From NCBI GenBank assembly GCA_030704615.1, contig CM060733.1:25668001-25732000 (forward strand): a DNA stretch of 64,000 bases, in the 5' to 3' direction. Source of the stretch: Takakia lepidozioides (Eukaryota; Plantae; Bryophyta). This document shows positions 39,830-64,000 of this stretch, piece after piece. The notes beneath the pieces were generated by a model. The model was not told where the DNA came from. It saw nothing but the letters and a program-made list of their open reading frames with translations, and ran no database searches. The position numbers and the translations under genes were made by a program. Every line of letters starts with the position of its first letter. Positions within the stretch are counted from its first letter, which is position 1.

Positions 39830-40885
39830 ATGGCCCTGTTCAAGCAATAACAGGGGTTGACCTGTCCTGATTCTAAACAAAGATGATGGAGAGAGTTGAC
39901 AGGAGCTAGCGAACAGCTGCATCGCGATCGACAACTGGCTGCAATTGTAACAACTCTGAATTTCCAGCATTCCAAAGGATTGAATTACCTTCTGCAACGG
40001 GTGATGATCAAGGTACTGGTCCATCAATGCAATTCCCCACCAAACAAGTTGATCGGTTGACCATGGCGCACGAAGGTCCAAGAACTACCAGCACCAGCTG
40101 TGCTGTAGTATTTTGAGAATGTTCTAAAGCAAATGGACAACTGAATGCTACCAAAACTCCCAATCTCACATCACTATTCTTGACCTTACAACTATCATTC
40201 TTCCTGAAATGATCCGTAGCCAGCTTTGAAACTCATTGTAAGTCAACTGCCGGACCAAGAAAGCGAAAGGGACAAGAAGATGAGCACACCTAAGTTTGGG
40301 GTAACCTGTGGCACTTCCACTCATTCACTGGACTCATCATCAACCCCAGTTGCAATACACAAGCCACCCCAACAACCATCAAATTTGTGTGCATTGTCAT
40401 TTGGCCTCTTTAGACTTGAGGGGATCCTAGAACCAAAAGAATCAAATGAGAAGCACTCCATCTCGCATTCAACATGGTTTGTGTGATAGAAATCAAAAGA
40501 ATGTCAAACTGGTGGTGGGGTACCCTTTGAGGGTCTTGTAGACTACAGCCTACTGTGGATAAGTGCTACCAAGGATAAGTGTTATTTCTCTATATTTGTT
40601 AGGAACTTTGTACTCCCTAAGATTTCTCAAAGGGCAAATGTTATGTGTTTTGTGCTATGATACAAGCCATAAAGCGCAAGAAGGGGATACCACCCTGTGA
40701 CCAAAGACGCGGAGACATCACCTAGCAGAGTAAAGACATGAGAAGGGAGAACAGAGCCCAAAAGCTGGGGCAGAGAGAAGAAACTATGAGAAGAGGTAGA
40801 ACAAAGGCAAACAGAGAAGTGGCGGAACTTAGCAAATCAGACATTAGCCTACATGGTAACTTCTACATGTGCCGACGTCTCCTAA

Positions 40886-42524: not shown

Positions 42525-45500
42525 GTGCTCACAACTCTCTCACATCCAGCCACTCTGACATACAATTTGGCTGTTGGTAGGAATGGCAATGTGGTGGCTG
42601 GCGTGGTTGATGAAGTGGACCCTATTGAAGAATTCAGTTCCCAACGCACTGTATCAACAGAGCTCTATCTTCCCCCCACCCAAAACCCGGGCTTGTCTTT
42701 CAAGTTGGCACCCAGAGACAGTACTAGTTGTGCTGGTTCTGAAAATCAGCAGTGTTGCAGACAATCACGCACTGTAGTGGCCTCAGTTCCTTTATTGTCA
42801 CCTTCACAGGAGGTATCTCTTGACTCTCCTGGGAGATTTCCAGTTGATGGGGGCACTGTAAAAACCTCCAGTGGACGGGGAGAAGTCGAAGGGGTGTTTT
42901 CACATGGAGGCCAAGAGAGAATATCATGTTCTGGATACACCCGAAAGAGTAGCAAGAGGAGGAAAGTGGGCAACACCCAGCTGGGATCTGCTGATGTGGC
43001 AGCAGCAGTTGGTTTGACTGTAACAGCTGCAGAAGCAATGGTACTTGCTGGCATATTGGCAGAATGCACTTCAGGCAGCAACCTTTCACCCTCCATGATC
43101 CTGGAGGCAACCATACAGTTGCGACGGGCACGCCAGATGTGGGGATTAGACGATTATGATGTTGGTTCAACCAGTGTTAGTGGTGCTCATGAAGAGGTGC
43201 TGCGTGTAAACAATTCGGGGGACATTCAAGCTGCAGCAGATGATGAGCCATTGAAGGCCCTTGATGATGTGGAGATGCAGGAGGCTATGGCTGATGTGGG
43301 TTTCATAGAAGCATCAGGTAAGTTTCACACCACTTATTGCATGGTGATTTTGGTGTGGGTGGACATCTGTAGAATTCCTTCAAAGAATGTAACACTTTCT
43401 AATACCTTGCAAAACTCCAAGTGAGTGTTTTCTGGTTGGACAATCCTACAGCTCACAGATGGGGGAGCCCTCACTGTTTTCCCACTGTCTTCTGGAAAGT
43501 CTTGTCCAGTTTCAGTTGGAATAAGGGCTCTTTATTTACTAATATTGCACACTGGACGGGCAGGTATGGTGAGGAAGCCAGGAGTGAAGTAGTGGCAGTG
43601 CAGATTAGGTCTGAAGGTCCATGTATTACAGCTCATTTTCATCTGAGAAACTGCTTACTTGATTGCTGAATCAGCTGCAGAGCCAGGGCACCTTGAGGAG
43701 GTCCACCTACCTGGATATGACGATGTACATAGCCAAGAAGGTTGGAGGCCAGACCTACCATGCAACCGAGCGAGACCTTACAGGGATGAGACACGGACCA
43801 ACACTCTTGATGTGTTAATTCCCAATACCAAATACGTTTGTGAGAGAGACAGAACACACTCTCGAGACAGGAAATCCTTGAGGAAAGAAGAGCACTCCAT
43901 TTCAAAGGATATTTTGTCAGAGAAGGAGATTGGTACCGCTCCTTTGTGGAAATATGGTGGATGTGTGGATTCTGCATTGAGGCCAGACAAAATGCAATGG
44001 CAGGAATCGGACAGTAGACCAAACCTCGCCGTGGCAAAGGAAAAACTCAATGAAGAAGTGCCTAAGAGCTCTGAGAGGAATGAAAGAGTAGATGCTGCCT
44101 TCAACTCCACCGCAGGCAAAAAGCAGGACTTAGGGCTTTCTCTGGCCGTGGAAAATTCCAGAGTGGAGCTGTCTGCTTTGACTCCAACTATGGGGGATAA
44201 CTGCAAAAGGCCTTTCCCTTCAGCGGATCTTACCTCACCTCCTGTAGTATCAGGGGTGGCCATTTGCCATTCACAGGGGCACGGACCCTTACAAGTTGTG
44301 GGTAGACAATCTGAGCGTCATACGGGTCATGGTGACTTGACTGTTAGAGTGGACCATGTTGATGCCATCATTCACAAGTCTCAAGAGGATTTATTCCAAG
44401 ATGGCATGGTTAGCTGCCTTACGTATCTTGCTCTCCTTGATGTGCACATTTCTTAACCCCTCTGTCATCTCATTATCTATGCATTTACTACACTGCTTCT
44501 TCGTTATATCCGGCAAGTTTTGCATTGTCTTAATTGATATACTTCATAATCTATTCCTTACAAGATTGTCTTCTATAATAGGTATGTGTTGTTATATGAA
44601 ATATGCTAATATCCTCTTGTTGCTGCAGGCAGGCAAGGAGATGAATGGGAGACCCTGCTCCTCAGTGGAACCTATTAAAGACTTAGAGTGCCCTACGGTC
44701 CAATGTGAGCAGAGTAGAGGAAAACTTTTGACAAAAAGTGCAGTTGCAGAGCATGCAGAAAGAGCTTGCATAATTCCCAAGGATCTTGTTCCCACTTCTC
44801 TATGCAGTGAGGAGAAAAATACTGGACATGCAAAACTTTCATTGTTAGAAACAGGGGGAACCAGAAATCCAGTGAAATTGCCAGAATCAAAAGTCACCAT
44901 CAGGGTACCTGCTTGTGTTCATGAGGACATCCACGAAGAAAATTTTCAGCTGCACTGCTCAGGGCAGCAAGGCAGCACCGCTGTTGTCACTATGACTTCC
45001 AAACCATCTGGGGAGGGCTCAGGCTCACCTATAAAACTTTTCAGTAGCCGGTGGTATGGAGGGTGGACTGGCCTTGTAAGATCTCAAACTAGGTTCTCCC
45101 CATGTGCATGTTTTCTGTTTGGTCCTCTAGGTTTTGCAAATGTGTACCTCATGTAATGGGGCATGTGGATTGGTTCCCACCAGTTGTGGTTTGATAATGT
45201 CAAGACACAGCTGCATGGCATTACCAGCACTAGTCATGGGTATGTGATGAAGTCTGCTGTTTACCTAGCAATGCGTTCTTATCTTCTGCAGGGACATGTA
45301 TTGCCCAATAAGGTTAGAGGGACCACAGAGACCTCGAGTGATGCACCCGAAGCAGAAGTGGATATGCATTATTTGCCCGAGCCCTGGGATATTGGCACTG
45401 AAGATGCCATGCCTGAACGGGCAACAGCCTTGACCTGCCTTAGAAGCAAACAACAGGACTACCAGACAATCACCACCACGTGCTTTACAGTGCCAGCCAT

Positions 45501-48500
45501 AAAGGAACTGCTGTGTCCCTCTGAGGCCCCAGTATCTCTGGGGGAAGACCAGGTTGAGTGTGTCCCCTTGGGAACTGCCCGTGTCCAGGAACAAGCAAGC
45601 AGAAAGGCAGGAATTGTGCCTCAAGGATCTCATTTGGGTTCTGTGGCATTTTCTTCCCATGCAGATCCCCTCTGTTCATTTGTTCCCTGCAGCATCTCTG
45701 TGCCAGATGCGTCTTGCCTGCCAGCCCACATAAACAGTCAAAGTGATTTGAGCTTGGTTGCTAGGGTCAAGGCCATGAGTCTGGCTGTTGGTGGTATAGG
45801 AAACAATGGCATCCAAGCCATCTCAGTAAGGAACAGGTGTGCAGCAGAAATGCTCAACTTGGTTTTCCCATCTGGGTGTATGGGAGAGACCAAGGAGACT
45901 CAGGAGCATTTGCATGAGAGAGACCATGGTGGGGGGAAGCTTGCGCCTGATTCTGTGAAGCGGACCCATGTAGCTTCGCTGAGGCCATACAGCACCTGTG
46001 CAACAGCATCTGCAAGCGCTCTTGGATTGCGACTCCATTCCGTAGAGTTAACTGCAAAAATGCACGGCAACAGAGGAAAGTTTTTGGAAACTCCTCATGT
46101 GCCAAGGCTTGCAACAAGCAGAGGAAACGATGCCCTGCAGAGTGAGGAGCAACTCTTGGCCAACAAGTCTGCAAACTTCATTTCTTCTGGGTGTGTGCTT
46201 GCAGATGAGGATATCTCATCGCCTCTTAACCTGGAGGCTCCGGCGGGAACACCTGTTCCCGTTGAAACGGTACCCGGTGTCAATCAGGAAGGTGCTACAA
46301 GAATGCATGGTAAAGTTTGTGGCCCAGAGAAGCAGTGTTTGCCTCACCCAAGTTCATCAGAGTATATCAGCCAATCAGAGTCTCCCCCTCTCTTATGGCC
46401 AAATGGGAGGAAACGCCGACTTAGAGCTTGTAGGATTGTGGAAACTGGCAGCGATTACCACCCTGATGAAGGTCAGTGCATTTCTTATGGGTTCCGGTGT
46501 ACTAGATAAGTGTCACCGTGTTCAATCCCTGTCACTTCCAGATAAACATGTAGTTATTGACTATTGCCAGGAGGGCAGAGTGTTTTGGGTGGCAAGGACA
46601 TTGTGGGCCTCAATGGATTGTCCCATGCAAGACATCCTCTTTTACCCACCTAGTACCAGTTGTCTAGTGGAGACCAACATTTCTATTCCATGCCCTTGAT
46701 AGGTTTCTGTTTCATGTGTGTTTTTGAAGGTGATAACAGCTTTGAAAATACAACGTTGGTGATGCAGGGGAAACTCCATGCAGCTGTCCTATTTCTCCCA
46801 TGATAGATGCCACGAGATTGACGGGCAATCAAGGTGTGAATGAGAGTGGATCGGTTGCCACAGAAGAGTTACAGCACATTCATCTCAAGAAGGTTGCAGC
46901 CACAGGAGATGTCAATATTGCAGATGAAGTAGTGAAATCATTTGCTCCAAAACAACCCCAGAAGAGCAACGGGGGTGCAAAAGATAGAGCATCTCTTTTG
47001 AAAAGACCCAAAGGTATTACTTACACAGCCCAAAAAAGATTCTTGAGACAGGTTTTTCTGAGTTGGGCTCTGGACAAGGCAAATGTGACACTCTGTGGTC
47101 AGGCATTGCTTTGGCTGCAGTCAGGGCATTGGCTGATGTGAATCCATTTGGTCATGTGGACTTTACCTGGTAGTGATGTTGCCTGCAGTGCATTGTGTTG
47201 TTTTATGCTAGTATTCATTCAGATCTCAGAAGGATCTTGCAATGTACTCTATTGGAGTTTGAGGGTGACTTCTGATTTTTTATTGTAAGCAGAACATCTT
47301 CTTTGTTTTGTCAGTTTTCGAATTTAATTGCATTTGGCTGCCTCCCCTCATTACTTCTTCTCGACAGCATTGGATGGTGTTTAGCACTTAATGATGTGCA
47401 GGCCTCCAGAAAACTTAGGTTACCACACTGGACTGTCCTCCGTTTCATCCCTCAAATGTCTACATTTTCTGAAGGCACTGCTTGACACAGCTCAACCACA
47501 TCAACCTTCCTTGCATCCGTGCAAAGGTTGCCAAGTTTATTATGCTGTCCTTGACGAGTCATGATAGATCTCATCTTTTGAACAGACGCAGCCTTCTCCA
47601 TTCTGCTATGACCATCTGCTCTCAAGCTATATCTCTTTTTTTACTGTTTTTCAGTGAATCCCAATCCAATCAGTCTAACAATGAGACAACCTACATCTTC
47701 TGTTGGCAGCAGCTAAGGAGACTACAAGCCGAAATGAGCCAAAGGTCGGGAGTAAAAAGCCCTCAAAAAAGACCGGGAGAAAGGAAGCCACAGCAGTAAG
47801 AGAGGCCATCGGCATCAAGAACAAATCCATTCCAAATGGGCAACAGGAACAAGGTCTACTGTTTGGAGGCCTACGGTTTTTACTAACTGGCTTTTCACTC
47901 AAAAAGAAGGATGACCTGATCAAGACTATAAAAGAGAATGGGGGTGTTGTCCTTCTGAATGTGCCAGCAAGAAAATTGAGGGGAAATGGCAGGGAAAAGC
48001 AAGGACCACCAATTGTAATCTCCCCTCAGCTGGTTAGTTTCATCATGAGCACCTGACTTCTAATTTGGGATGGCTATCTTTTCCATTTTCGTCAAATCCA
48101 ACTCTACTGGAAAAGCGTAGAACCACTTTTGAATTTCGTTTGGACATAGAAAAGTAAATGGGGCTTTTTGTGGTCTTGGTTCACTTTGGCAACTTTCTGC
48201 AGGTTCGTACACACAAGTTTTTGTACGGATGCGCTGTTGCCTCCCCTCTTATAAAGCCCGCATGGATAAATGCTTCAATAGCTGCGCACGAGCCATTACT
48301 CTTTGCCAAGTAAAGAAGTTCCTCAGACCTTTGCTTTTTTGGCTACTGATGTGCTTGAATATAAATATGCCATGTGGTTAAGTTGGCAGGAACTTTTGAT
48401 TTTGAATGGCTGGCCTGCAGTAACTGTTTATGTACTCTTTCTCCAAATTGTGGTATTTTGTGTTCAGATATGAGCACAAGCCTAAGAAGAGGGTTAAATC

Positions 48501-51500
48501 ACTGGCTCCTGGGCCTGCTGGTAAAGAGGCAAACCATTTGTATGACAGAGGGTCCCTTTTCCACAATATCCAAGTTTTTCTTCATGGGAAACCAACCTTT
48601 CGTACCCAGTTCACAGCTTTGATCCAGGCACGCCTCGCTCTCCCTGGCCCTCTGGACACTGGGGTACTTGATGAATTTGGTTTTTCTTCCAAACATTGCT
48701 TATCCTAAATACAGGAAGCAAACTTGGCTTGTTGTGTCAGATCTCTACTTCGTCCTAGTGGGCATTATAAGATGTTGTCTTTCTTATGCAGATGGTGAAA
48801 AGATTATCTCCTTTGCTACAGTTTTACTGATGATGATTGGCCCATTTAGCATTCTTACGTCAATGAGAAATTGCATGTGTGGGGCCATGCAGTGATACCT
48901 CATACATATTTTCATATGACTTCTGGGTTCCAGCATTACACTAACAAAAATCGTGGGTCGTAGGTTGAATGTTCAGTTGTTTGTAACCAATCTGAACTCA
49001 CCAAAAAGTGATGAAACTAAAAGGATCTCCTGGATGAATTGATGGGATGCAGCATGGGGGTGGCAAGGTGGTGGGCAATGTTAAGGCCATTGCTCAAGAG
49101 AATAGGGCAGCAGGAACTCTGGTGGGTGTTGTGGTGGCAGAGGAGCCGTGCAGGGTGCCCCGTAACCTTCGGCATTTGGTGGCAAGCTTGAAGCTGCCTC
49201 TGATGGTCTGTCCACTCACTCACTATTGTCCAGCTTGTTTACTTACGCTCTTGCACGAAGTATAACCAAGGAAATTATGTGCTTGACATAACTGCTCATA
49301 AAGTCAATGGACTGGAACAAAGGAGGTAGGTCATACTGCTGCAAAGGCAGTTTCTTTCTAGTTGTCAGTCTCACCAATGTAATGGGAACAGTTCCATCCT
49401 TTCAATAAAGAGCTAGAGAAAGGAGAACTTACAAGATCAGAGAAAGAAAGGGCACAGATAAGAAATTGGTGACTCCCCTCCAGATGATGGAGAATATGCT
49501 CACATGTGTGGATGCAGGCCGGGAAGTGGGTGGTAGAAAGCTTGTTGGCCAGAAGGCTTCTGCTGCTGCCAACAACAGCTGCCAACTTGCGACATACAAC
49601 ACAGCCATGCCAATCTACGTCCCTGACTGGGCCTGGTGGCAATGTCCAGCAAGGTTCAAGGAGAAAACCCTTGGCAAATGCAGAGAGAGGTGCACAGAGA
49701 CCAGACATACAAGCATCAACTTTAAGAACGAGAAACTGCAATTTGCACAAAGATAAACTCCTTAATCCCTTGAAGGCCAACAGTGGCTTTACAGTTGTGG
49801 CACCTGATTGTCGGCAAGAGGACTCCCTGGGTTGGTTCTGGTTAGGAAGTGGTTCTGCTTCACCTCTTACTGTTCCACATTTGGCAGCTGGACTTACTGG
49901 ACAGGTTCTGAATGCGTTTTCTGGAAGAAAATGTCAAAAGAAGTACTCGTATTATGGAGCTTTCTCCATGGACGGTGTACAATATTGCCTTGGAGATAAC
50001 ATAGAGGTGAGAGTGGGTAATGACTTTGAAGTACAGGAATTGCTAGGAAACAAGCAGAAAGCATGAATACCACTAGCTTTGGCAGATATCCACTATTAAG
50101 ATGTATGGTAGTCTGTGATAACTTCATCGCCTGGTTAGCTTGTTTGGGGTCAGATTCTTTGGCTGCTTTGTGTCTCAGTGCATCCACTTTTGTGCCCTAC
50201 AAATATTCACGCATTCATCATGGCCAAGCATCTTGTTATTCCAACCTTCAAGGCAAAATGTGCAGTGTCTGGTGACAGGAGGTGCAGCCATAGGAGATTG
50301 ATAGAAGCCAATGCAGAGAGGGAAATGGAGCAAGTGTGTATTCTTTGTTAAACATGAGGGAGCGCTTTGTAGTGCGAGATTCGTATTTGGTTGCTCACAT
50401 ATGATCATGCAGTGACTATCATTGGTATGTATGCCGTGTTTTGGTCAGATTCAACCAACCTCAGAAGGCAGCATGCCTTCCATCGCTCGAATCGAAGGCC
50501 TGTGGTCAGAAGGCCAGAAATCTGCTGTCTCTGTAGCTGACGTACAAAAGAAAGGCAAGAAGGTGGCGATGCGATGCCGTTGGTTTTACCGCCCATCAGA
50601 CACTGGCTTCCCTTGTTACAGCTCTGAGAATGACCTCTATCTATCTAACCACTTTGAGGACGACATACCTGTAAGTCTGTTAAGTATACAATCTTCATCA
50701 AAATCTTCTCCTATGTTACAGAAACTGTGCTATTCTTTAGTAGTTCGAAGTGGTTAGCCTGCCTACCAACCCCATCTATATTGAATCATTCTGCCACCTG
50801 TAATGCTGGTAGTGTGCTCTTTTATGCAGGGGATTTCCTGCCTTGGCCTGTGACATTTTTTTGATAGTATACTCACCTTCGTGTTTATAATAATGTGATG
50901 CATGGTGTGTACATCCACCCATCCATCTGCACATCTGTTGATTCTGTGTGCTGGCTTTGTTAAATTCTCAGTATAAGTTTGTCCTTCTCGCACGTTTGTT
51001 GGGCCTTCCACAGATGTAAGAAACTCCTTTCTCACACACCTCATGAGGATTGGATCTGCCCATTTCTCACCACAGGCGAAATGGAAACAGTACCATTTCT
51101 TCTTTTCTCACCTCACATAGGAGACCAGAGCAGATACTGGTGTCTTCAAGAGATTCCTTGTCCCTGGCAACAGCTTTAGGGTATTAAGATCTGATGTGCT
51201 CACCTGCAAGAGGCTCTCTGCTATGTTGTTCTACATTGCTTGCTGTGACTATTAGTGTGTGGCAGACTGGTGATCCATACCATATGCCCTGGAATGTCAT
51301 GTGGCCTGTGTCCTCCCATGTGTCTTCATGTTAAGCAGACATAACCCGTTGATCTTGCAATGCTATGGCAACCCAACTTATGAGATTGATGAGTAAGTAA
51401 TTGTATTGGCTAAAAGTTCTTATCTTCTGTAAATGGCTACTTTCATGGCATGATCTCAATGCTTTAGGGTGAGCTGTCTGAATGTTGTGATATTGTCTGC

Positions 51501-51691
51501 AGGTTTGCAAGATCCTGAAGAAAGTGAACCTGACGCTGTTTGTAGGAGGCAAGGCAATACCTTGCAATAATTGGAATCCAGAGGGAGACCTCAATTGTGA
51601 CTCACTAAGGTCTCCAAATGTTGGGCTGGGTGAAGCCTACACTTGCACTTTCTTTTATGATTATTGCAAGGAGTCTTTGCATCAATTATAG
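42525..51691 (+). CDS. Large multi-exon protein with tandem BRCT repeats and C-terminal BAH domain (5' end unresolved)
   Basis: Low-complexity N-terminal exons with conserved-looking islands (AVGLTVTAAEAMVL, SRWYGGW, DPLCSFVPCSIS). BRCT1 LFGGLRFLLTGFS…ENGG…^VRTHKFLYGCAV…PAWI (47860-48309); BRCT2 LFHNIQVFLHGK…^HGGGKVV…^KWVVESL (48468-49560); BAH YGAFSMDGVQYCLGDNI…IARIEGLW…CRWFYRPSDT…ENDLYLSNH…CTFFYD; TAG at 51689-51691. Confidence 0.82.
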
Positions 51692-52779
51692 GTTAATTTC
51701 TTAACTGGTAGACTCTCGTCATTCCTGCACCTGCCCAATTGTCTTGCTTAACCTGGCAAACATGATTCAATGCGTGTACATTTTGCCACTAATAGTGACA
51801 TATTTTGTACCGAAAAAATCTGGTACGATTGTTTTATGGTAGATGTTTCTATGTTCTTGAGCTTTGTGACTCAGAATCCAACTTCAAATGTATGAATTGC
51901 GAAGTAATCCATGTGATTGAGTAAAAATGAATGCTGATTGCAAGTAGTGCAAAGTGCTAGTATGTTTCATAATATACACCTGCTCTGTCATTTCAAGAAA
52001 AGGATATGGAATGATTAGAGTAATTGTCTTCAGTCTGCAACAATGCCTATCATCAAGCTTTTGCACCCTTCCCTTGTTGAACTAGAGAAAGATGCGGAGC
52101 CTCGCAAGCATGTGCGAATTGTGAAGGTATCACTAGCATAAAGGCTAGTGATAGTGAATGTATGCTATGATACCTTCACAATTTGCACACACGGCTTTGC
52201 ATCAATTTCATCGTAAAGAGCCCAGGCTGGCTTTGGGCTTGAAATGCTGACGCTGAGCCGCAAAGTTGTGACGCAGTTGTGCTGCCCGCTGGGGTTCAGA
52301 AGAGGAGAGGAGGAATCCCCGGGAGACAAAGGAAAAAGCTGAACCTCACATCGTGGTTGACAATGGTTTCTCAGGGCTGCCAATACAACGTTGCTGCCGA
52401 CAACTCATGTCTGGGAAAATCCTCGTTTACCGGCTTGCGAGACAACACATCTATCCTTGCACGACAGGATACACCGATTTGTGTGTGTTCTTTGAAATTT
52501 TGAACTTCGAGGAGATCATTGAGTATGCACTGCTCAAGATGTATCTCCCACACTCTGGAATTTCATTCACATCACTGACATTAACAGGTGTTGCCACCCT
52601 AGTCTTCGGCATTTTCTGCACCCCGCGAACTCATGACTATGTGGTCATGAGTTACACACTCACTAAGCCACGTCTTTCTGTAGAGCAGTATGCTCTACTG
52701 ATTGCCGGAATTTTTAAGCTGCTTCTTTTCTTTGTATTTTCTGCAGGTAACTCAGTTCTCCAGGGGTGAGGTTGAGCAA

Positions 52780-53440: not shown

Positions 53441-53877
53441 TACTGGTGAAAGTAGTTGGAATTCCTGTACAGTAATCGCTTGCCTGACGTTTTTGAGATG
53501 AACTTGGTACCTTGGTACGTTGGCAGTCACCACAGACAAGAAAGTCCTTGATGACATAGAGAGGCATCCCAAGGAACCTGCTGATCCGTCCAAAAAGAAT
53601 CACCAGCTTCTAATTTTGGAGGCACAGTGAACTTCCTTTTCCTGCTACACATCATGCAAAACAATGTGCGTATCTGGAACAACCTGCAGCCTCCGTGTGC
53701 GGCGACCAAAAAAATTTAGAACAGCATGGATGTCCTCAATTTGTTGATGCAATTTGTCATCTCGAACAGATGTATGCACCTCATTCCTTTGAAGTACCGT
53801 CCGAGCTGCCAGCTGCAACATAAATTTTGGACAGCAGCAGAAGTAGCGGCGTCCTTTGATTCACTTGACAATGAGTT

Positions 53878-56262
53878 TTACTTGAGGACATATTTTGCAG
53901 CACGTTCTGCAATCTCCACATTCCCATGGATATTGCAGGCACCAAGCAAGGCTCTCCACACCACAGCATCTGGTCCAGCTGGCATTTTGTTAATGAGGTC
54001 CTCTGCCTCGTGTAAATGTCCAGCGCGACCAAGAAGGTCCACCATGCAGCCAAAATGCTCCCATGTAGGAGTGAGGCCATGATCTCGAGTCAAGGAATCC
54101 CAGTAGTGTCTGCCTTCATCCACTAGGCCCCCATGGCTACATGCGGAGAGAACACATACAAAAGTTATACCATTTGGCTTGAACCCTTTCTGTTGCATCT
54201 GTTTAAATAAACCCAAGGCTTTCCTACCACATCCATGCTGGGCATATCCTGCGATCATTGCATTCCATGAGACTACATCTCGCTGAGGCATATTGTCAAA
54301 TACCTGATTTGCATCATGTATGTTCCCACATTTGCAATACATGTCAACCAGGGCGTTCTCCAGAATGGTATCTGGAACAATTCCAGTTTTTATGATGTCA
54401 GCATGAACCTTTTTACCCTTCTCCAGGGCTGCCAGGCTAGCACAAGCATTCAAAATGCAGACGAACGTGACGTGGTCAGGTGTCACCCCTTCCTGCATCA
54501 TTTGCTCGTACATCTCCAAAGCCTCCCTACCACACCCATGATGGGCATACCCGGAGATCATCGCGTTCCATGAGACCACATTTCGTTGACCCATATTGTC
54601 AAACACTCGACTTGCACCATTCATGTTCCCGCATTTGGCATACATGTCCACCAGGGTGGTGTCCAGAATGATATCTGGTACAATTTCAGCTCTCATAATG
54701 TCAACATGGACCTCTTTGCCCTTCTCCAGGGCTGCCAGGCTGGCACAAGCCTTAAGAATGCAAACAAATGTGATATGGTTGGGTGGCATCCTTTCCTGTG
54801 TCATTTGCTGATAGATTTCCAAAGCCTGCGTTCCATACCCATGCTGAGCATAACCTGCAATCATCGTATTCCATGAAACCACATTTCGTTGACCCATATT
54901 GTCAAAAACTTGACGTGCATCCTTTATGTTCCCACATTTAGCATACATGTCTACCAGTGCCGTGTTGAGAATGGTATCTGGTACAATTCCAGCTTTCATG
55001 ATGTCAGCATGAACCTCTGCGCCCTTCTCCAGGGCTGTCATGCTGGCACAAGCCTTGAGAACGCAAACAAATGTGACGTGGTTGGGTGTCACCCTTTCGT
55101 GTATCATTTGCTCATAGGTTTCCAGAGCCTCCCTACCACACCCATGCTGGGCATATCCTGAAATCATCGCATTCCATGAGACCACATCTCGTTCAGCCAT
55201 TTTGTGAAACACTCGATTTGCATCATTTATACTCCCGCATTTGGCATACATGTCAACCAGAGTATTTTCGAGACTGATATCTGGCAGAATTCCAGCTTTG
55301 ATGATGTCAGCATGGATCTCTTTGCCCTTCTCCAAGGCTGCCAGGCTGACACATGCCTTGAGGACACAAAGGAATGTGACCTGGTTGGATGTCATCCCTT
55401 CCCGTATCATTTGCTCATAGGTCTCCAAAGCCTCCCTACCACACCCATGCTGGGCGTATCCTGTGATCATTGCATTCCATGAAACCACATTTCGTTGAGC
55501 CATATTGAGAAACACTCCATTTGCATCATTTATGCTCCCGCATTTGGCATACATATCCACCAGGGCAGTCTCAACAGTGATATCTGGAACAAGTCCAGAT
55601 TTCATGACATCAGCATGGACCTCCTTGCCCTCCTGGAGGGCTGCCAAGCTGGCACAAGCCTTGAGAACACAAACGAAGGTGATGTGATTGGGAATCATCC
55701 CTTCCTGAATCATTTGTTCATAAGTCTCCAAAGCCTGCCTACCACACCCACGCTTGGCATATCCTGCCACCATAATATTCCATGTGGACAAATCTCGTAC
55801 ATGCATTTTGTCAAACACAAGGCGTGCATCTTCAATGCTCCCACACTTGGCATGCATGTTGATGAGGGTGTTGAGTAGAAAGATCTTCGGCTTGAATCCA
55901 TTTTGGATCATGTGGGCATGCACCTGCTTTCCCTCCACTAGGCCTTTCACTTTGATGCACTCCTGCAAAAGACACACATATGTACTGGAGTCTGCCAAGA
56001 TGCCCCCTTGGTTCAAAATTTGCAATGCATCTTTCAATCGTCCTGTCTTACACAGTGTCCTCACATCCCCACAGGTGCCAGAAGAGTTCTTATGGGCTTT
56101 CTTTCTTGGTCCTCTTTCTGAAGTAGTCGAAGCCCCTGATCCAAGCAGCCCTGTGGCCCCTGCTTTCAGTTGACCAGCTACCAGTTTAGGTTTCTTCTCA
56201 GAAACAATCCGCAGTGCCTTGTTGGTACTCTTCTTCTTGTAATCTGTTCCCCTGGGAAGAAT
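53878..56262 (-). CDS. Open PLS-PPR tract of gene B (20 repeats + E1)
   Basis: Part of the 830-aa ORF (whose listed start is a TTG inside an intron). Regular PLS triplets, P2-L2-S2, E1 VWRALLGACNIHG, then a premature stop. Confidence 0.85.
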   Translation of the reverse strand: MLPRGTDYKKKSTNKALRIVSEKKPKLVAGQLKAGATGLLGSGASTTSERGPRKKAHKNSSGTCGDVRTLCKTGRLKDALQILNQGGILADSSTYVCLLQECIKVKGLVEGKQVHAHMIQNGFKPKIFLLNTLINMHAKCGSIEDARLVFDKMHVRDLSTWNIMVAGYAKRGCGRQALETYEQMIQEGMIPNHITFVCVLKACASLAALQEGKEVHADVMKSGLVPDITVETALVDMYAKCGSINDANGVFLNMAQRNVVSWNAMITGYAQHGCGREALETYEQMIREGMTSNQVTFLCVLKACVSLAALEKGKEIHADIIKAGILPDISLENTLVDMYAKCGSINDANRVFHKMAERDVVSWNAMISGYAQHGCGREALETYEQMIHERVTPNHVTFVCVLKACASMTALEKGAEVHADIMKAGIVPDTILNTALVDMYAKCGNIKDARQVFDNMGQRNVVSWNTMIAGYAQHGYGTQALEIYQQMTQERMPPNHITFVCILKACASLAALEKGKEVHVDIMRAEIVPDIILDTTLVDMYAKCGNMNGASRVFDNMGQRNVVSWNAMISGYAHHGCGREALEMYEQMMQEGVTPDHVTFVCILNACASLAALEKGKKVHADIIKTGIVPDTILENALVDMYCKCGNIHDANQVFDNMPQRDVVSWNAMIAGYAQHGCGRKALGLFKQMQQKGFKPNGITFVCVLSACSHGGLVDEGRHYWDSLTRDHGLTPTWEHFGCMVDLLGRAGHLHEAEDLINKMPAGPDAVVWRALLGACNIHGNVEIAERAAKYVLK

Positions 56263-57529
56263 CTGCACCCACACTCCATTCCTACCTGCTTCAACAATGT
56301 ATGCCTCCACGTGAGGAGCTGACGATGGTAACCCATAACTTGAATAGGAATCACCACCACCGCCTACCAAATACTAGCTCCCATGCTGAATTGCTGGAAA
56401 AACTGCAAAAAGGTGGGAGAAAGGAAGAAACAAATTGTGACAAAGGTTTCTTGTTGTTTGCTTCTGATGGCGCATGACGGACTTCACCTTTCTTCCCAGA
56501 GTGTTGAGTGGGGTTTGAAGAATATCCCTTCCGAAGGTTCTCCTCATCTTTATTCTTGCTTTTTGGATACTTTCCTGCAACTCCAGTACCAGTGACATAT
56601 TGAAAAAGTCAGACCACAAGAGATCCACCTGGACATAACTCACCAAGCCCACAATAGTTGGAAAAATGAGAAGAAAAAGCCCAAAAAAGTGTCAATCCAT
56701 GAGTGTGATGGAGGAAACTTAAATCAGCTGAAGGCAAGGAAAATACTTCAAGCAACTTCTGAATCTAGTTTCATGGTATTTACCTTTAGCACCATCCAGC
56801 CTTTCCAATTCGTCCTCCACCCACCAAGGGTTCTTGCTACTGTCGATCCACAGTGCCTGGTTGGTACTCTTGTGCTTGAAATCTGGTCCTCTAGGGTGGA
56901 TCTGCACCCCTGCCTCCTCAGCTATCTGTATCTTCACAACAAAATGCATAGAGTCTGCCCCTCACTACAAATAGCTGACAATGACAACCCCTATTGTCTA
57001 CAACGAGAACACCACTCTTTACAAATACTGGTTCCTATGCTGAATTGGTGGCAAGACTGAAACAAAAGTGTGAGCAGAGAGACAAGAATGTGATTGCCAG
57101 CGTTGGCTTGGGCAATCCCTTTCAGGATGTTTGACTCAGTCTGGAATTTCCATAGCGCAGACGTTCAAATTACCCAGAATTGAGTCTTGATTAATGCACT
57201 AGCATTGTCCAAGCATGATGTTGATCCAGCACTGCTCCACTAAACTGCAACAAGTGCTACACATTTGTTGAATGTAGTTTGAATGCCAGTTTGAATGCTA
57301 GTTAAAAACTTCGCAAGAAATTTTTTGACACTGTTGCTCTGCTTCTACCGTAAGACAACAGACATTCACCTTATTGCCTCGATTGTCCCACCAGTTGGTA
57401 GGGTCTGCAAAATATTCGTTCCAAAGCTTCTCCACGTCTGTAATTTGGTGTTTTGGAGGTTTGCGTTTGTGGCCACCTTGCTCAATCCCTTCTCCATAAG
57501 CTGCGCCCTCCTCTATTGGTCTCCACCGC

Positions 57530-57773
57530 TTACTCGTACTAATTCTCCACTTTTCGTTCCTGCGTAAGAGGTGCGAAGCGCAGAAATGTAAGATTAATAA
57601 TTTTTTTCATCGGTCAGGGGGGGTTCGGAGACCTGCCCCACCAACTCCCTAAAGGGTCAGGGACAAGGAGCCCCAGGGCTCTCCGGAGAGAACCTCTTAA
57701 CAAGAGATTGTTGCGATCTGGTTCTAAGGAAAGTGAATAATTTTTTTTATCATATCATATACAACATATAAAT
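57530..57773. other. 244-bp insertion in exon 1 of gene B
   Basis: Flanks align contiguously with gene A exon 1 (63900-63990). CCGC is present on both sides of the insert. Confidence 0.75.
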
Positions 57774-58319
57774 CCGCCCCCCAATCGACCTGAAACTATC
57801 TGAAGCAAATCTCAATGTGAGAAATTGCACGGGGTCCCATACAGGGTGGACGTGATAAATCTTTTCGAAACTCTCTGGACAGGGTCAGGCTTGCAAGCAG
57901 CGTAGTCTCGCAGGGGCTTGTGAGTGCAGCCCGTGACGCTTGGAGCACTTGTGGAGGGTGCTGAGCTTACGATACGCCCTGCCATGCCTCTCCTTCTCCA
58001 AGGCTTTTATTGAAAGCAAATCAGCATTTAAAACACTCCCCTGGTTTGTCAGGTGTCTTGTCTCAGGTGAGAGGTAGGGTACTAAGAGCTCCACAAAGAA
58101 TCCTCACACCTAGAGAATCCTACGTATGACACGATGCAAAACATCCCACCCTGCACTTGGACTTCTTGATTCTGTATTTTCGCTTTTAATCGGATCCTCC
58201 TTCTGGCTCAACAGGCAAGTCTCTTCCTCATGGAAGAAGAGTCGGGAGTTCCTTTCAAGATCCAAACTTGCAGCTGTGCAACATGTCAGGTTGCTTTGAA
58301 GATATTTGGTGTTTAGGCC

Positions 58320-58790
58320 GTGCACATGTTTTCCTTCAGCTGGGCCTTGCGTCTTGATGCACTTTTGGCAAAGCCTAACGAAAACGAAATGCCTTCTTGC
58401 TTGAGAAGAATGTGCTGCCCTTACATAGTCTCCTTACATCCCCACAACTGAGAGAGGAATTCTTTTGAACCTTGGGTTTGTTTCAAACTGGAGAGGGTCA
58501 ACAACAGCCCTTGGTAAAGCCTATAAAAGGCTCCAGAGCTCTCAAGGATTTGTAGCATTCCTGTGACATCACCATTACAATGTTTTTTGTTAAATTTGTC
58601 AACAGCTCCTGTGTGTTTCCCAGCAATCTTTGGGATAAACTTTGTGGTGTCTGGCAGTCACCTCGCACGCATGAAGGTCCATGCTGACACACACCAGGCG
58701 TCCCAGGGGACGTGCTGGTGAGCACAGATGCAATGGCCAGCTTCTCATGCAATGGTCAGAATTAGGATTTTTCCTACTTTGGGCCCCAAT
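58320..58790 (-). pseudogene. Degenerate DYW-domain copy plus PPR N-terminal remnant between genes A and B
   Basis: HEKLAIASVLTSTSPGTP…GDCQT..KFIPKI (~58610-58760) and KNSSLSCGDVRRLCK…CQKCIKTQGPAEGKHVH (~58320-58470). Confidence 0.75.
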
Positions 58791-59073
58791 CATACTCTTT
58801 TGAATTGCTGTGAGTTCCAGCTGCTCCACAATTCTATTATGCTATGTAACTGCTCGCACAAAACCTGTCCACTACCCTCAGTTGCTGCTCCAATCTTCAT
58901 TGAACTGTCCTCGTTACTATGGGCTACAGACAGAAATAACTGAGTAACTGCAGTGCTAATCGTCGCACCAAATAACACAAAATGCTTAACAATTCCATTC
59001 ATACAAATAAGCACAAACTATCACCCGATGTGTACAGCACCACTTTGAGCATCTTTAATGCATGTAGCTTGTT

Positions 59074-62000
59074 TCACCAGTAATCCCCACAAGAACATGC
59101 CCCTTCTTGGAAATGGTGAAAGCGGTTGGCATCCCGTACAATAATCGCTCGTTTGACAATCTTTGAGATGAACTTTGTGGCTGTGTGGCAGTCACCACAT
59201 ACACGAAGGTTCTTGATGACACGGAGAGGCATCCCAGGCGATGTGCTGATCAGCCCAAAAGCAATGGCCAGCTTCTCACTGTGGTTGCAGAGAGAAAATT
59301 CCTTTTGCACCTCCACATCATGAAAAACAAAGCGGGTGTCAGGCAAGTACCCTGCCTCCTTCATCTGCCCAGACAATCTTTTTAGCTCAGCATGGATCTC
59401 CTCAATTTGCGGATGCAATTTGTCGTCTACGACGAATGTATGCACCTTGTTCCCCACCTCAATGCAACTGCAACCTGGCTCCTTCCTCACACCTCTGACC
59501 TCCATCATTTTTCTCAATTTTGCAGTATCATCCCACCTGCCGGCCGCAGCATATATATTGGACAACAACACATAAGTTGCAGCATCCTGTTGATCCCACT
59601 TGAGAATGCATTTTGCCGCACGTTCTGCCACCTCCACGTTGCCATGAATGCTGCAGGCACCAAGCAAGGCCCTCCATACGACAGCATCTGTTTGGGTTGG
59701 CATTAGATTAATCAAGTCCTCTGCCTCACCTAAGTGCCCTGCACGGCCGAGAAGGTCCACCATGCAGCCCAAATGTTCCCCAGTCGGAGTGAGGCCATGA
59801 TCTTGAGTCAGGGAATCCCAGTAGTGTCTGCCTTCATCCACTAGGCCCACATGGCTACATGCAGAGAGAAGACATACAAAAGTTATACCGTTTGGCTTGA
59901 AACCTTCCTGTTCCATTTGTTTAAATAGATCGAGGGCTTTACTACCAGAAGCATGCTGGGCATATCCTGCAATCATTGCATTCCAAGAGACCACATCCCG
60001 CTGAGCCATACTGGCAAACACCCGCTCTGCATCACTTATGCTCCCGCACTTGGCATACATGTTGACCAGGGCAGTGTCAAGGATAATATTTGATACAATT
60101 CCAGCTTTCATGATGTCAGCATGGACCTCTTTGCCCTTCTCCAGGGCTGCCAGGCTGGCACAAGCCTTGAGAATGCACACGAATGTGATTTGGTTTGGTC
60201 CCATCCTTTCCCGTATCATTTGCTCATAGGTTTCCAGAGCCTCCCTACCACACCCATGCTGGGCATATCCTGCAATCATGGCATTCCATGAGACCACATT
60301 TCGTTGAGCCATATTGTCAAACACCTGATTTGCATCCTGTATGCTCCTGCATTTGGCATACATGTCAACCAGGCTATTCTCCAGGATGGTGTCTGGCACA
60401 ATCCCAGCTTTCATGATGTCAGCGTGGACCTCTTTGCCCTTCTCCAGGGCTGCCAGGCTTGCACAAGCATTGACAGCGCAGACATATGTGACCTGGTCAG
60501 GTGTCACCCCTTCCTGCTTCATGTACTCATATGTCTCCAAAGCCTCCCTGCCACAGCCAATCTGGGCATATCCTGCGACCATTGCATTCCATGTGACTAC
60601 ATCTCGTTGAGCCATATTGCCAAACACCCTACTTGCATCATTTATGCTCCTGCATTTGCAATACATGTCAATCAGGGTATTGTTCAGGCTGATATCTGGG
60701 ACAATTCCAGCTTTCAGGATGTGCGCATGGACCTCTTTGCCCTTCTCCAAGGCTGCCAGGCTGGCACAAGCCTTCAGAACACAGATGAAAGTAACCTCAT
60801 TGGGTATCACCCTTTCCCATATCATTTGCTGATAGGTCTCCAAAGCCTCCCTACCACAGCCACTCTGGGCATACCCTGTGATCATTGCGTTCCACGAGAC
60901 CACATTTCGTTGGGCCATATTGTCAAACACCCGAATTGCATCATTTATGCTGCCACATTTGCAGTACATGTCCACCAGGGCAGTTTCCACAATGATATCT
61001 GGCACAATGCCAGCTTCGATGATGTCACCATGGACCTCCTTGCCCTTCTCCAGGGCAGCCAAGCTGGCACAAGCCTTGAGAACGCAAACAAATGTGACTT
61101 GGTTGGGTTTCACCCTGCTCCCTATCATTTGCTCATATGTCTCCAAAGCTTCCCTACCACATCCGTGCTGGGCATATCCTGCGATCATTGCACTCCATGA
61201 CACCACATCTCTTTGAGACATATTGCAAAACACATGATCTGCATCGAATATGCTCCCACATTTGGCATACATGTCGACCAGGGCGGTGTCCAGAATGATA
61301 TCTGGCAGAACTCCGGCTTTCATGATGTCAGCATGAACCCTCTTGCCCTTCTCAAGGTCTGCCAGGCTCGCACATGCCTTGAGAATGCAAACGAACGTGA
61401 CCTGATTGGGTGTCACCCCCTCCCAAATCATTTGGTCATAAGTCTCTAAAGCCTCCCTACCACACCCACACTTGGTATATCCTGCCACCATTATATTCCA
61501 TGTATACATATCTCGTACATGCATTTGGTCAAACACTAGGCGCGCATCGGTGACACTCCCACACTTGGCATGCATGTTGATGAGGCAGTTCAGTAGCAAT
61601 ATGTTTGGCTTGAATCCACTTTGGATCATGTGGGTGTGCACCTGCTTTCCCTCTGCTAGGCCTTTCATCTTGATGCACTCCTGCAAGAGACAGACATACG
61701 TACTGGAATCTACTGAAATTCCCCGTTGCTTCAGCATGTGCAAGGCATCTTTCAGTCGTCCTGCCTTACATAGTTTCCTCACATACCCACAAGTGCCAGA
61801 AGAGTTCTTGTTGACCTCCTCCCTTGGTTGTCTTTCACAAACAGTTGTCACAATGGAAGAGCCACATTCAAACGACTGTGCTGCCCCTGCTTCGAGTTGA
61901 CCATCTACCCATATATGTTTCTTGTAGCCACCAATCCACAGTATTCCCTTGGTACTCTTGTGCTTCAAATCTGGTACTCTAGCATGGCTTTGCACCCACA

Positions 62001-62163
62001 CTCTGTCCCTACCTTCTTCAGTGATTGATGCCTCGACAATCAAAAATATATAATTGTCCACCTCACTGCAAGGAGCTGACAGTAGTAATAGCGAGGGAGA
62101 AAGCGAGGATGAAAATTTGTGACAAAGTTCTCCATGCATCTTGTTTTGTGCTGCTGGAGGCAT
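59074..62163 (-). CDS. Gene A main ORF: half PDF-PLS PPR(20)-E1-E2-DYW, C-to-U RNA editing factor type
   Basis: 1029-aa ORF with PG box KEPGCSCIEV, HSEKLAIAFGL, KNLRVCGDCH and RFHHFQEGACSCGDYW. N-terminal SHARVPDLKHKSTKGILWIGGYKKHIWVDGQL is the second half of a PDF motif. Confidence 0.93.
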   Translation of the reverse strand: MPPAAQNKMHGELCHKFSSSLSPSLLLLSAPCSEVDNYIFLIVEASITEEGRDRVWVQSHARVPDLKHKSTKGILWIGGYKKHIWVDGQLEAGAAQSFECGSSIVTTVCERQPREEVNKNSSGTCGYVRKLCKAGRLKDALHMLKQRGISVDSSTYVCLLQECIKMKGLAEGKQVHTHMIQSGFKPNILLLNCLINMHAKCGSVTDARLVFDQMHVRDMYTWNIMVAGYTKCGCGREALETYDQMIWEGVTPNQVTFVCILKACASLADLEKGKRVHADIMKAGVLPDIILDTALVDMYAKCGSIFDADHVFCNMSQRDVVSWSAMIAGYAQHGCGREALETYEQMIGSRVKPNQVTFVCVLKACASLAALEKGKEVHGDIIEAGIVPDIIVETALVDMYCKCGSINDAIRVFDNMAQRNVVSWNAMITGYAQSGCGREALETYQQMIWERVIPNEVTFICVLKACASLAALEKGKEVHAHILKAGIVPDISLNNTLIDMYCKCRSINDASRVFGNMAQRDVVTWNAMVAGYAQIGCGREALETYEYMKQEGVTPDQVTYVCAVNACASLAALEKGKEVHADIMKAGIVPDTILENSLVDMYAKCRSIQDANQVFDNMAQRNVVSWNAMIAGYAQHGCGREALETYEQMIRERMGPNQITFVCILKACASLAALEKGKEVHADIMKAGIVSNIILDTALVNMYAKCGSISDAERVFASMAQRDVVSWNAMIAGYAQHASGSKALDLFKQMEQEGFKPNGITFVCLLSACSHVGLVDEGRHYWDSLTQDHGLTPTGEHLGCMVDLLGRAGHLGEAEDLINLMPTQTDAVVWRALLGACSIHGNVEVAERAAKCILKWDQQDAATYVLLSNIYAAAGRWDDTAKLRKMMEVRGVRKEPGCSCIEVGNKVHTFVVDDKLHPQIEEIHAELKRLSGQMKEAGYLPDTRFVFHDVEVQKEFSLCNHSEKLAIAFGLISTSPGMPLRVIKNLRVCGDCHTATKFISKIVKRAIIVRDANRFHHFQEGACSCGDYW

Positions 62164-62167
62164 TCAC

Positions 62168-64000
62168 CTTTCTGCCCTTGTCAAACCATTAACTGGGGTT
62201 TGAAACATAATTCTTCCATAGCTCCTCATGTCTATTCTTGCTTTTTGGATGTTTGCCTGCAACTGCAGTACCACTAACATATCAAAACAGTTGGATAAAC
62301 AAGAGATCCACCTGGACGTATCTTAGGAGACCCATAAAGAAGTGTGCATGCTCCTAGGGGAACCTTTGTAGCAAGGTGAAAATTTAAAAGGCAGATGGGG
62401 CAAACTCACAGTTGTCACCTATTGCATGTGATGGAGGACCAATTAAGCCTAAATAGGCTAAAGAAGAAAGGTACTCCCCACAAACCCTGAATCTAGTTGC
62501 ATGATAATTACCTTTAGCTGCAACCAGCCTTTCCAATACATCCTCCACCCACATAGGTTTCTTGTAGCTATCACTCCACATTGCCTGGTTGGTACTCTTC
62601 TGCTTGAAATGTGGTCCTCTATGTGGGAGCTGCACATGCACTCCATCCCTGCCTCCTTCAATGGTCCTTGTCTCCGCATGTAAATGCAATATCTTGGCTC
62701 TCATTACAAGTAGATGACAATGACCACCGCTAATCTGCTGTTTATAGCAAGCATCCCACTCCTACCTAATGTACACTAGTTCTATCCCGAGAGACTGCAA
62801 AAAACATTATGAGAGGAGGGACACAGCATGTCAGCCAGGTCCGGCATGGCTCAGGCATACCCTTTTGGGTATTTGAGACAGCCTGGAATTTCCAGAGTGC
62901 TAGGGAACAGAGTGTTAACTAGCGTGCTGGCATTGGCCTCACCCTGAACAGCATGAGGTTGTCCCGACAGTGCTCCATTATATTGCCTCAACTTCAACAG
63001 ATTCGAGTGTGGTTGAGTCAGTATTGAGAAATGGCAGACAAGAGAGAAATAAAATGGTACTTCATAACGTGGAACGCTCCAAGAGCTTATAGAACAATAG
63101 AGAGAAAGAAACAAGAAAGAGAGAGGGGCCCTCCACAAGCAGCCCAAAAGCAACTATTGCTCAAGGGATTGTCTAGAGCAATGCTTCATGCAGGTAAGCT
63201 ACCAAGCATCTCTGATCCTCGTAATGCAAGACCTCTGTGAGGGATTGGGTGTCACGGAATAGACAATTGAATCTCCCACGGATCTCATAGTAGAAAGGGC
63301 AGTGAAAGAAGGAAAGTTCTTCACTTTCGATTTCCTTGTTGTTCCCAGCGCAAGCGGGGCATAGGCGGTCCTCACGTTGCAGGCTTACATGGGCTCAGAG
63401 CAGTAGGAAAGTGCATACAATGCAGGATGACAGTAGAGGGCCATTCATACGGTAGGGTATTGCAGACTGTGGGAGCCCCACCGAACCTCCCCAAAGCGCT
63501 CAGAAGAGAGGGAGATAGAGCTGCAGATAGGCAACCGGGCCGCAAGTTTCTATCGTCACGGAGTACCAAGAATGTCTCCCGATAGAACTGCAGTTTTGTT
63601 GTTAGAGTGGCTGGTTTCCATATCCGCCTGACGTGAAGTTCCAGAAGTTCTCGGCTGATGCATTTCGAGAGAGACCCTTGCCACTACCGTTAATTTGTGA
63701 GAAATTTTTCAAAGCATCTTCTCGACTAGTCTGTCTCTTCTCTAATTAATAGACATTCACCTTATTGCGATTGTCCAACCCTTGACTGGGGTCCGCAAAA
63801 TACTCGTTGCAAAGCTTCTCCACATCTGTAATTTGGATTTTCGGATATTTGCGCTTGTGACCTCCTTGCTCGTTCCCCTCTCCATAATCTGCGCCATCAT
63901 CTACTGTCTCCACTGCCCCGCAAGTTGACCTGAGACTTTTGGAAGCAAATCTCAAGACTGGCAAATGCACAAGGCACCCATAGATTATGGACAAGCCACA
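62168..64000 (-). pseudogene. Upstream PDF exons of gene A (damaged)
   Basis: Exon 1 63761->64000 (DVEKLCNEYFADPSQGLDNRNK); exon 2 62512-62629 (LPHRGPHFKQKSTNQAMWSDSYKKPMWVEDVLERL); exon 3 62168-62256 (HEELWKNYVSNPS*WFDKGRK, TAA at 62189-91). The acceptor of exon 4 reads AA instead of AG at 61990-91. Confidence 0.82.

Follow-up and report, generated by a model that had tools for sequence, protein, structure and literature searches.

The window analysed here, a 64,000-nucleotide stretch of Takakia lepidozioides DNA, contains two neighbouring minus-strand loci (gene A, 59074-64000; gene B, 53444-57985) in which exons resembling the PDF motif of OSB proteins lie upstream of a PLS-PPR exon, on the same strand and with conserved intron phases. 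The question arises as to whether these exons belong to one protein, and what a PDF would do in an RNA editing factor. We show that genes A and B, arranged in tandem and both decaying, belong to an old family of land-plant PLS-PPR(-E-DYW) proteins of the organellar editing type, whose N-terminus carries one to three PDFs of OSB type.

The motif itself was examined with a PDF profile made from database proteins only, each exon being scored separately. In a set of 2,539 six-frame pieces from the window, gene B exon 1 reached 33.2 bits (E 5.9e-9) and exon 2 49.0 bits (E 6.8e-14), in line with the OSB assignment proposed by an earlier, sequence-only reading of this DNA; in the reverse direction, a profile made from the window PDF pulled out proteins carrying both SSB and PDF. 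E values of about 1e-14 and 1e-9, together with correct splice phases, rule out a chance match. The earlier reading ended exon 1 at 57370, before a GT, and placed exon 2 at 56901-56784, after a CAG; this phase-0 join does give the peptide it had deduced, and the two exons together are predicted to encode a complete OSB-type PDF motif. The domain scan of ORFs and exons found no Pfam model for PDF, no solved structure was found by sequence search (by fold, the best match had only Z 3.0), and an Atlas feature search with exon 2 yielded nothing beyond a weak phage match (0.78). In a fold comparison, the predicted PDF structure scored TM 0.89 with an SSB/OSB cluster and 0.83-0.87 with PPR/DYW clusters.

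Table. Features of the PDF-PPR locus (window coordinates)
Feature	Position	Strand	Description
Gene B exon 1 region	57370..57985	-	ATG 57985; stop 57814; insertion ~57770-57530; intact N-half of PDF1 at 57435-57370
Gene B intron 1	56902..57369	-	GT-AG, phase 0; position common to OSB and other PDF-PPR genes
Gene B exon 2	56784..56901	-	C-half of PDF1 intact; phase 1 at end; 49.0 bits
Gene B exon 3	56488..56574	-	N-half of PDF2, decayed; net loss of 2 nt, frameshift
Gene B exon 4	53878..56262	-	C-half of PDF2 decayed, linker, 20 PPR motifs, E1, premature stop
Gene B E2/DYW remnant	53444..53877	-	Frameshifts and stops; 74% DNA identity to gene A DYW region
Further DYW end and PPR start fragments between genes A and B	58290..58750 (58747-58624; 58468-58320)	-	
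Gene A exon 1	63761..64000	-	5' end beyond window; degenerate N-half of PDF1 at 63823-63761; 13.8 bits
Gene A intron 1	62630..63760	-	GT-AG, phase 0, within PDF1
Gene A exon 2	62512..62629	-	C-half of PDF1; PHF replaces PDF; last Trp pair partly lost; phase 1 at end; 28.6 bits
Gene A exon 3	62168..62256	-	N-half of PDF2; in-frame TAA 62191-62189
Gene A intron 3	61990..62167	-	Acceptor CAG changed to CAA; open frame from ATG 62163; phase-1 AG sites 62016, 62013, 62001
Gene A exon 4	59074..61989	-	Diverged C-half of PDF2 (61989-61891), linker, 20 PLS-type PPR motifs, E1, E2, complete DYW

Both genes contain PLS triplets and 20 canonical PPR motifs behind a degenerate first one, which agrees with the array of 20 counted previously, and the code pairs ND, NN, TN, TD and SN correspond to the canonical RNA code. 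Upstream, no SSB/OB-like domain was matched before the PDF in the scanned ORFs and exons (the 5' end of gene A lies beyond the window), and none was found in the leader sequence of gene B. The possibility of separate, adjacent OSB and PPR genes was considered and ruled out: no SSB domain was matched, half of a PDF is encoded by the PPR exon itself, and intact fusions exist elsewhere.

Each copy is nevertheless damaged. The gene B leader has a 1-nt deletion with a stop at 57814, and there is also an insertion of about 240 nt. Exon 3 measures 87 nt in gene B against 89 nt in gene A, so that PDF2 and the PPR exon are in different frames; the diverged second PDF described earlier is present, but in gene B it does not run in frame into the repeats. 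Gene B terminates at 53878, the end of E1, and the frameshifted region beyond leaves it without an E1-E2-DYW bearing HxE...CxxC; it could yield at most a PDF-PPR protein without deaminase. Gene A possesses counterparts of these exons, with the donor at 63761 and exon 2 at 62629-62512, and the complete E-DYW attributed to it, with E1-E2-DYW, HSE...CxxC, a terminal DYW and a frame open to 59074. Conserved Trp and Asp residues are gone from its PDF1, and its third intron is spanned by an identical contig (61755-62154). It could yield at most PPR-DYW with a damaged or absent PDF. A homologue search with its diverged PDF2 half returned nothing, the query being too diverged for the word index, and in a quick tree its C-terminal region falls outside the Sphagnum/Calypogeia group.

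Canonical splicing joins an intact PDF to the PPR array in a single frame in neither gene, and at this locus only cryptic phase-1 acceptors plus skipping of exon 3 would preserve that frame. The candidate acceptors are 62016, 62013 and 62001 in gene A and 56289, 56286 and 56274 in gene B. Judging from these gene structures, no single gene of the window combines an intact PDF with an intact DYW: the locus does contain the exons of the PDF-PPR-DYW fusion first read there, but each copy is damaged, either in its PDF or in its DYW part. Neither 57370/56901 nor 63761/62629 is among the 15 read joints listed out of a larger set (544 more went unlisted), the second junction lying beyond the stretch covered by that comparison; a paralogue-level joint (60441/56860) is present in both RNA runs, and the high depth of transcript contigs over gene B exon 2 comes from paralogues. 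The Takakia locus itself mainly illustrates decay and adds little more.

Is the PDF then a mere passenger, an OSB exon cassette captured by, and duplicated with, PPR genes, and tolerated since it leaves the frame intact? Such a history would fit the decay of 7 of the 8 PDF copies of genes A-D in the window, as well as the organisation of the motif, a two-exon cassette with phase 1, internal phase 0 and phase 1 boundaries, whose symmetry allows a PDF to be gained, duplicated or lost cheaply with the frame kept. A moss-type OSB gene and the PDF-PPR genes of Sphagnum and Calypogeia also have the phase-0 intron within the PDF; it is not universal in OSBs, because in the angiosperm OSB gene examined the PDF region is uninterrupted. 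Moreover, the PDF1 exons of gene B score higher against OSB-type than against PPR-type PDFs (116 versus 100, and 130 versus 112), and this greater closeness to OSBs could reflect a recent recapture. A dN/dS comparison restricted to exon 2, the exon-4 PDF half and the repeats (exon 1 was left out for a 3-nt indel) gave about 0.6, about 1.2 and 0.25, respectively, from small counts. PDF decay in all but one window copy, and the many members without DYW, do indicate that the module is dispensable in many paralogues. However, fusions in liverwort, moss, lycophyte and fern still have intact PDFs, over a depth of time at which neutral drift would have erased them, and we regard the passenger scenario as improbable.

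These fusions in other seedless plants also rule out a novelty confined to the Takakia genome. PDF-PPR proteins are annotated in Sphagnum, Calypogeia, Diphasiastrum and ferns, and many of them have a DYW of the catalytic type. A PDF is present in 34 of 120 proteins selected solely by PPR similarity, although in none of the gymnosperm matches of that set, and conversely all 52 long PDF matches are PPR proteins. In total, 89 fetched sequences (isoforms included) combine PDF and PPR; 30 of them have HxE...CxxC, and the full DYW is missing in the other 59. Some fusions are carried by intron-free contigs, one of which (3.3 kb) holds a PDF-PPR-E-DYW frame without interruption. [quoted passage not shown] Gene models for it are already public, contrary to the idea that ORF-level annotation misses the fusion; it is only the PDF that has no Pfam model. 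By this distribution, the family is older and wider than previously supposed. Across liverwort, moss and lycophyte fusions, the PDF keeps its aromatic and basic residues. Mean column conservation is 0.78 for the PDF and 0.69 for the repeats, a figure biased because it was the PDF that brought many of the rows into the set.

What could the PDF do in intact members? It may be a folding cap, or a protein-protein or oligomerisation module of the PPR solenoid, devoid of any nucleic-acid role. The PDF is predicted to be a compact domain (pLDDT 87), and a joint model with the first repeats is good (pTM 0.78). Yet fusion PDFs retain the OSB invariant residues, among them Trp, Arg and Lys common to ssDNA-binding OSBs, their number varies from one to three per protein, and many PPR-DYW proteins function without any PDF; we find the cap rather unlikely.

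The reading that we tentatively prefer is that the PDF anchors an RNA editor at single-stranded nucleic acid in the nucleoid. The PPR array would read organellar RNA via the usual code and the DYW would deaminate C to U in RNA, while the PDF would act as a sequence-independent single-strand anchor, holding the enzyme at nucleoid ssDNA (transcription bubbles, R-loops) beside nascent transcripts, where anchoring would speed target capture by the adjoining N-terminal repeats. Anchoring at ssDNA is favoured because OSB1 and OSB2 prefer ssDNA over dsDNA or RNA (PMC4166229); the PDF alone is enough for ssDNA binding (PMC6963530), and OSB1 limits R-loops (PMC8330923). Several observations run against an anchor, namely the decay, the missing DYW and the gymnosperm matches already mentioned. 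A lone PDF may also bind weakly by comparison with OSB2, which is tetrameric.

ORRM/RRM and MORF proteins are editing helpers of seed plants. By analogy, the PDF could bind the target RNA 5' of the PPR site and help by affinity or unwinding. The N-terminal repeats make the first contact with the 5' part of the RNA (PMC13324415), the PDF sits at that end of the array, and only some 10 residues separate PDF and first repeat in Sphagnum and Calypogeia. Fusions of RRM to PPR have precedents, and descriptions of moss editosomes name nothing beyond PPR and ORRM (PMC13386178); gymnosperm matches devoid of a PDF fit as well. Against this stand the preference of OSB proteins for ssDNA over RNA, the OSB residues retained in fusion PDFs, and the long linker in Takakia and Diphasiastrum. 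On balance, an RNA helper seems less probable than the anchor.

With somewhat greater reserve than for the anchor, we suggest that seedless plants may possess a large, old class of editing factors tied to organellar ssDNA by an OSB-derived domain, so that C-to-U editing and transcription would be coupled at the nucleoid. In its extreme form, the least likely of the three functions first envisaged, the fusion would bring the deaminase to single-stranded organellar DNA and cause genomic C-to-T changes, by which editing sites would become T in the genome. The same code lets designer P-type PPRs bind ssDNA (PMC12733224), the bacterial DYW-like deaminase SsdA works on DNA (PMC11789416), and the PDF favours ssDNA. 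However, we found no paper in which a plant PPR-DYW deaminates DNA, the DYW belongs to the usual C-to-U kind, an enzyme acting on DNA would remove the very sites that it edits, and 59 of the 89 sequences have no full DYW. Deamination of the DNA strand is thus very improbable.

In agreement with the earlier statement that no protein of PDF-PPR-DYW architecture has been characterised, we found no published description of a PDF-PPR fusion, in a search that stopped short of the original OSB paper (Zaegel 2006) and of subscription PPR-diversity papers. The fusion is missing from a 2026 OSB survey, and a 2026 survey of editing-factor fusions mentions neither OSB nor PDF (PMC13386178). The PDF is a mobile domain, and surveys demanding OB plus PDF overlooked these proteins. 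One polypeptide, conserved in bryophytes, lycophytes and ferns, joins genome maintenance (OSB) and RNA editing (PPR-DYW), two organelle systems that have been studied apart. It offers a direct way to ask whether editing is co-transcriptional and how seedless plants manage it without MORF helpers, because E. coli assays of single-subunit editors of the moss type can be run with or without the PDF.

Compared with known systems, the window genes resemble OSB1-4/pTAC9 in the PDF motif, its predicted fold and its variable copy number, and share the phase-0 intra-motif intron with the moss-type OSB gene, but OSBs have an SSB/OB domain and a C-terminal PDF, whereas here the PDF is N-terminal to a PPR array. 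Gene A is like PLS-E-DYW editors of the PpPPR_56/65 type in its PLS triplets, P2-L2-S2-E1-E2-DYW order, HSE...CxxC and canonical code; the window genes differ by an N-terminal PDF cassette on extra exons, and gene B by lacking E2-DYW. RRM-PPR and MORF-PPR fusions likewise join a nucleic-acid-binding or helper domain to a PPR protein, although the domains come from RNA pathways and the repeats are mostly P-type (PMC13386178). The PDF-PPR(-DYW) proteins of Sphagnum, Calypogeia fissa, Diphasiastrum complanatum, Adiantum and Pteridium have the same architecture and, in Sphagnum and C. fissa, the same intron; unlike the window genes, many of them are intact, and they are annotated merely as hypothetical or PPR proteins.

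Genes A and B are tandem PPR genes on the minus strand, whose repeats are about 80% identical and contain 20 canonical PPR motifs in each gene, with the usual code pairs. Two copies of PDF, the motif of the plant organellar ssDNA-binding OSB proteins, precede the repeats in both: PDF1 on exons 1 and 2, PDF2 on exon 3 and the start of exon 4. Exon 1 of gene B ends at 57370, next to a GT donor, and exon 2 (56901-56784) is preceded by CAG; joining them in phase 0 yields exactly the peptide proposed by the sequence-only reading, which had claimed a family fusing PDF to PLS-PPR repeats and an E-DYW editing deaminase. When a profile of 82 PDF motifs, all from database proteins, was scored on the 2,539 stop-to-stop pieces of the whole window, the exons in question scored as follows: in gene B, 49.0 bits for exon 2 (E 6.8e-14), 33.2 for exon 1 (E 5.9e-9) and 11.3 for the start of exon 4; in gene A, 28.6 for exon 2, 24.5 for the start of exon 4 and 13.8 for exon 1. 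The PDF motif is therefore real. A second profile, derived from the exon-2-type halves of the window, found 188 representatives among 1.84 billion proteins. Five of the ten top matches tested exceed the Pfam SSB cut-off, and are thus OSB proteins. Some multi-PDF proteins (P0132, P0125 and P0130; among them a Welwitschia transcript that has three PDFs) have neither a Pfam SSB match nor PPR, suggesting that they are PDF-only or that their OB domains are very diverged.

Features of the window related to the PDF-PPR genes, and their neighbors
Feature	Positions	Strand	Description
LTR-retrotransposon-like gag/protease/RT ORF pieces	420-7406	minus	judged by eye
Scrambled pseudogene	7700-10200	plus	PDF halves 8289-8330, 8388-8483, 8613-8648 amid PPR fragments
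Gene C	27541-31112	minus	PLS-PPR exon, 681 aa ORF; intact DYW absent
Gene D	31565-39832	plus	six exons joined by GT-AG splicing, phases 1-0-1-0-1, 955-codon open frame
LINE endonuclease/RT-like ORF pieces	33831-37196	plus	judged by eye
Multi-exon gene	42525-52769	plus	long low-complexity exons; BAH-like near 49900-50760; judged by eye
Gene pair A + B	53444-64000	minus	tandem PPR genes; A upstream, truncated by window edge

The predicted structure of PDF is compact (helix, small sheet, helix; pLDDT 86.6). No solved structure matched it by fold (best Z 3.0); in the Atlas, it matched an SSB/OSB cluster (TM 0.89) and three clusters of PPR or DYW proteins, with 57-127 members each (TM 0.83-0.87). 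The same model (m9677dd45607f) also matched hypothetical proteins of tailed phages, in two clusters (TM 0.73 and 0.64), which gives a lead toward a possible phage origin of PDF.

The fusion is found in Sphagnum, Calypogeia, Diphasiastrum and ferns, the latter including Adiantum capillus-veneris KAI5061374.1 and a Pteridium transcript. Among 120 proteins picked by similarity to the gene A repeats alone, PDF is present near the N-terminus in 34: Diphasiastrum complanatum accounts for 30, Sphagnum jensenii and Calypogeia fissa for one each, and Adiantum for two degenerate ones. It is missing from all of the Cryptomeria and Ginkgo matches. All 52 matches of a Sphagnum PDF query to long proteins were PPR proteins, many with DYW. 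PDF and PPR occur together in 89 fetched sequences (isoforms counted), 30 of which terminate in HxE...CxxC. On a contig of 3,285 nt, PDF-PPR-E-DYW forms a single uninterrupted frame of 713 aa, and two more contigs have an uninterrupted PDF-PPR frame without DYW; since genomic copies carry the PDF intron, these are probably spliced transcripts. PDF and the first repeats of a Calypogeia protein were modeled together with confidence (pLDDT 91.6, pTM 0.78).

The question arises as to how PDF was acquired. A phase-0 intron after WWDxRxxK is common to gene B, two Calypogeia genes, one gene from Sphagnum and a moss-type OSB gene whose SSB exons lie upstream, and the introns flanking the PDF exons are in phase 1. 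PDF thus probably moved at the DNA level, as a symmetric two-exon cassette, and not by retroposition. Distribution and shared intron suggest that the fusion arose before the split of bryophytes and vascular plants. Alternatively, PPR genes may have captured PDF repeatedly: the PDF1 exons of gene B are closer to OSB-type than to PPR-type PDFs. In a quick, unrooted tree of the last 300 residues, built on a biased sample, a branch with SH-aLRT 99 separates the Sphagnum and Calypogeia proteins and two from Diphasiastrum, 23 of these 24 having PDF, from the rest; gene A falls outside this group and is unplaced.

At the locus itself, the sequence-only reading was right about the PDF exons and about the complete E-DYW at the end of gene A (E1-E2-DYW, with HSE...CxxC), but it missed the lesions: both genes are decayed copies of the fusion. 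In the gene B leader, one nucleotide is deleted, a stop occurs at 57814 and about 240 nt are inserted; exon 3 is 2 bases too short, so that PDF2 and the PPR exon are in different frames; and a stop where E1 ends (53878) is followed by a frameshifted E2/DYW remnant. In gene A, PDF1 lacks Trp and Asp residues that are otherwise conserved, exon 3 contains a TAA at 62191 and the exon 4 acceptor reads CAA. Gene B is thus left with a good PDF and no deaminase, gene A with a good deaminase and poor PDFs. In both genes, AG sites in phase 1 lie 11-26 nt ahead of exon 4; as candidate acceptors, combined with exon 3 skipping, these could preserve the frame.

Other relatives in the window were also examined. 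Gene D consists of a leader, two degenerate PDFs, PLS repeats and E1, without DYW, and its intron 4 (33575-37312) contains LINE-like ORFs. Decayed PDF exons lie upstream in gene C (30279-30200 and 29875-29755), exon 1 having a stop. The scrambled pseudogene is either a recombined relic or an assembly artefact.

Expression was examined in two public contig sets, probably RNA, bearing the same species label. Contig depth over the PDF exons, contributed mostly by paralogues, was high: the exon-2 bin reached depths of 1543 and 124, neighboring intron bins had 0-7, and 58000-58399 had zero. A joint at 60441/56860, read from its two matched flanks (the short side has 32 letters), is present in both runs and places a PDF half before PPR repeats in transcript order. 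The 57370/56901 junction is absent among the contig joints listed, and the other proposed junction, 63761/62629, lies beyond the stretch compared. Identical contigs cover the 3' flank of gene A (58605-59090), and another spans its dead acceptor (61755-62154), consistent with intron 3 being retained. Within this intron, 61990-62163 (minus strand) is open from an ATG at 62163, in frame with the PPR exon, so that an intron-retaining transcript could still be translated into PPR-DYW behind a new leader.

What PDF does in an editing factor is considered in the light of its known activities. PDF alone is sufficient for ssDNA binding (PMC6963530), OSB1 and OSB2 prefer ssDNA to dsDNA or RNA (PMC4166229), and OSB1 limits R-loops (PMC8330923); the aromatic and basic residues of PDF are conserved in the fusion proteins. 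In PPR editing factors, the N-terminal repeats first contact the 5' part of the RNA and DYW works at the opposite end (PMC13324415). We tentatively favor PDF as a non-specific single-strand anchor distant from the active site, which would most likely keep the editing enzyme on ssDNA of the nucleoid, close to nascent transcripts. A role of PDF as an RNA-binding helper seems rather unlikely, and a role as a cap or interaction module of the repeats improbable. Frequent decay of PDF within the window indicates that many paralogues manage without it; a mere passenger is slightly more improbable still. Deamination of DNA by the fusion is the least credible proposal, a very slim chance. What is established for these proteins is the domain order, a canonical RNA code and an ordinary C-to-U-type DYW.

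No description of a PDF-PPR fusion was found in the openly searchable literature, in line with the earlier remark that no characterised protein is known to have such an architecture. A 2026 OSB survey accepted only proteins with both OB and PDF and makes no mention of PPR (PMC13393729), and a 2026 study of fusions among editing factors, covering 364 genomes, mentions neither OSB nor PDF (PMC13386178). The PDF-PPR fusion is a real and old domain fusion, apparently undescribed so far; it is a variant of the PPR-DYW editing factors, not an OSB protein.
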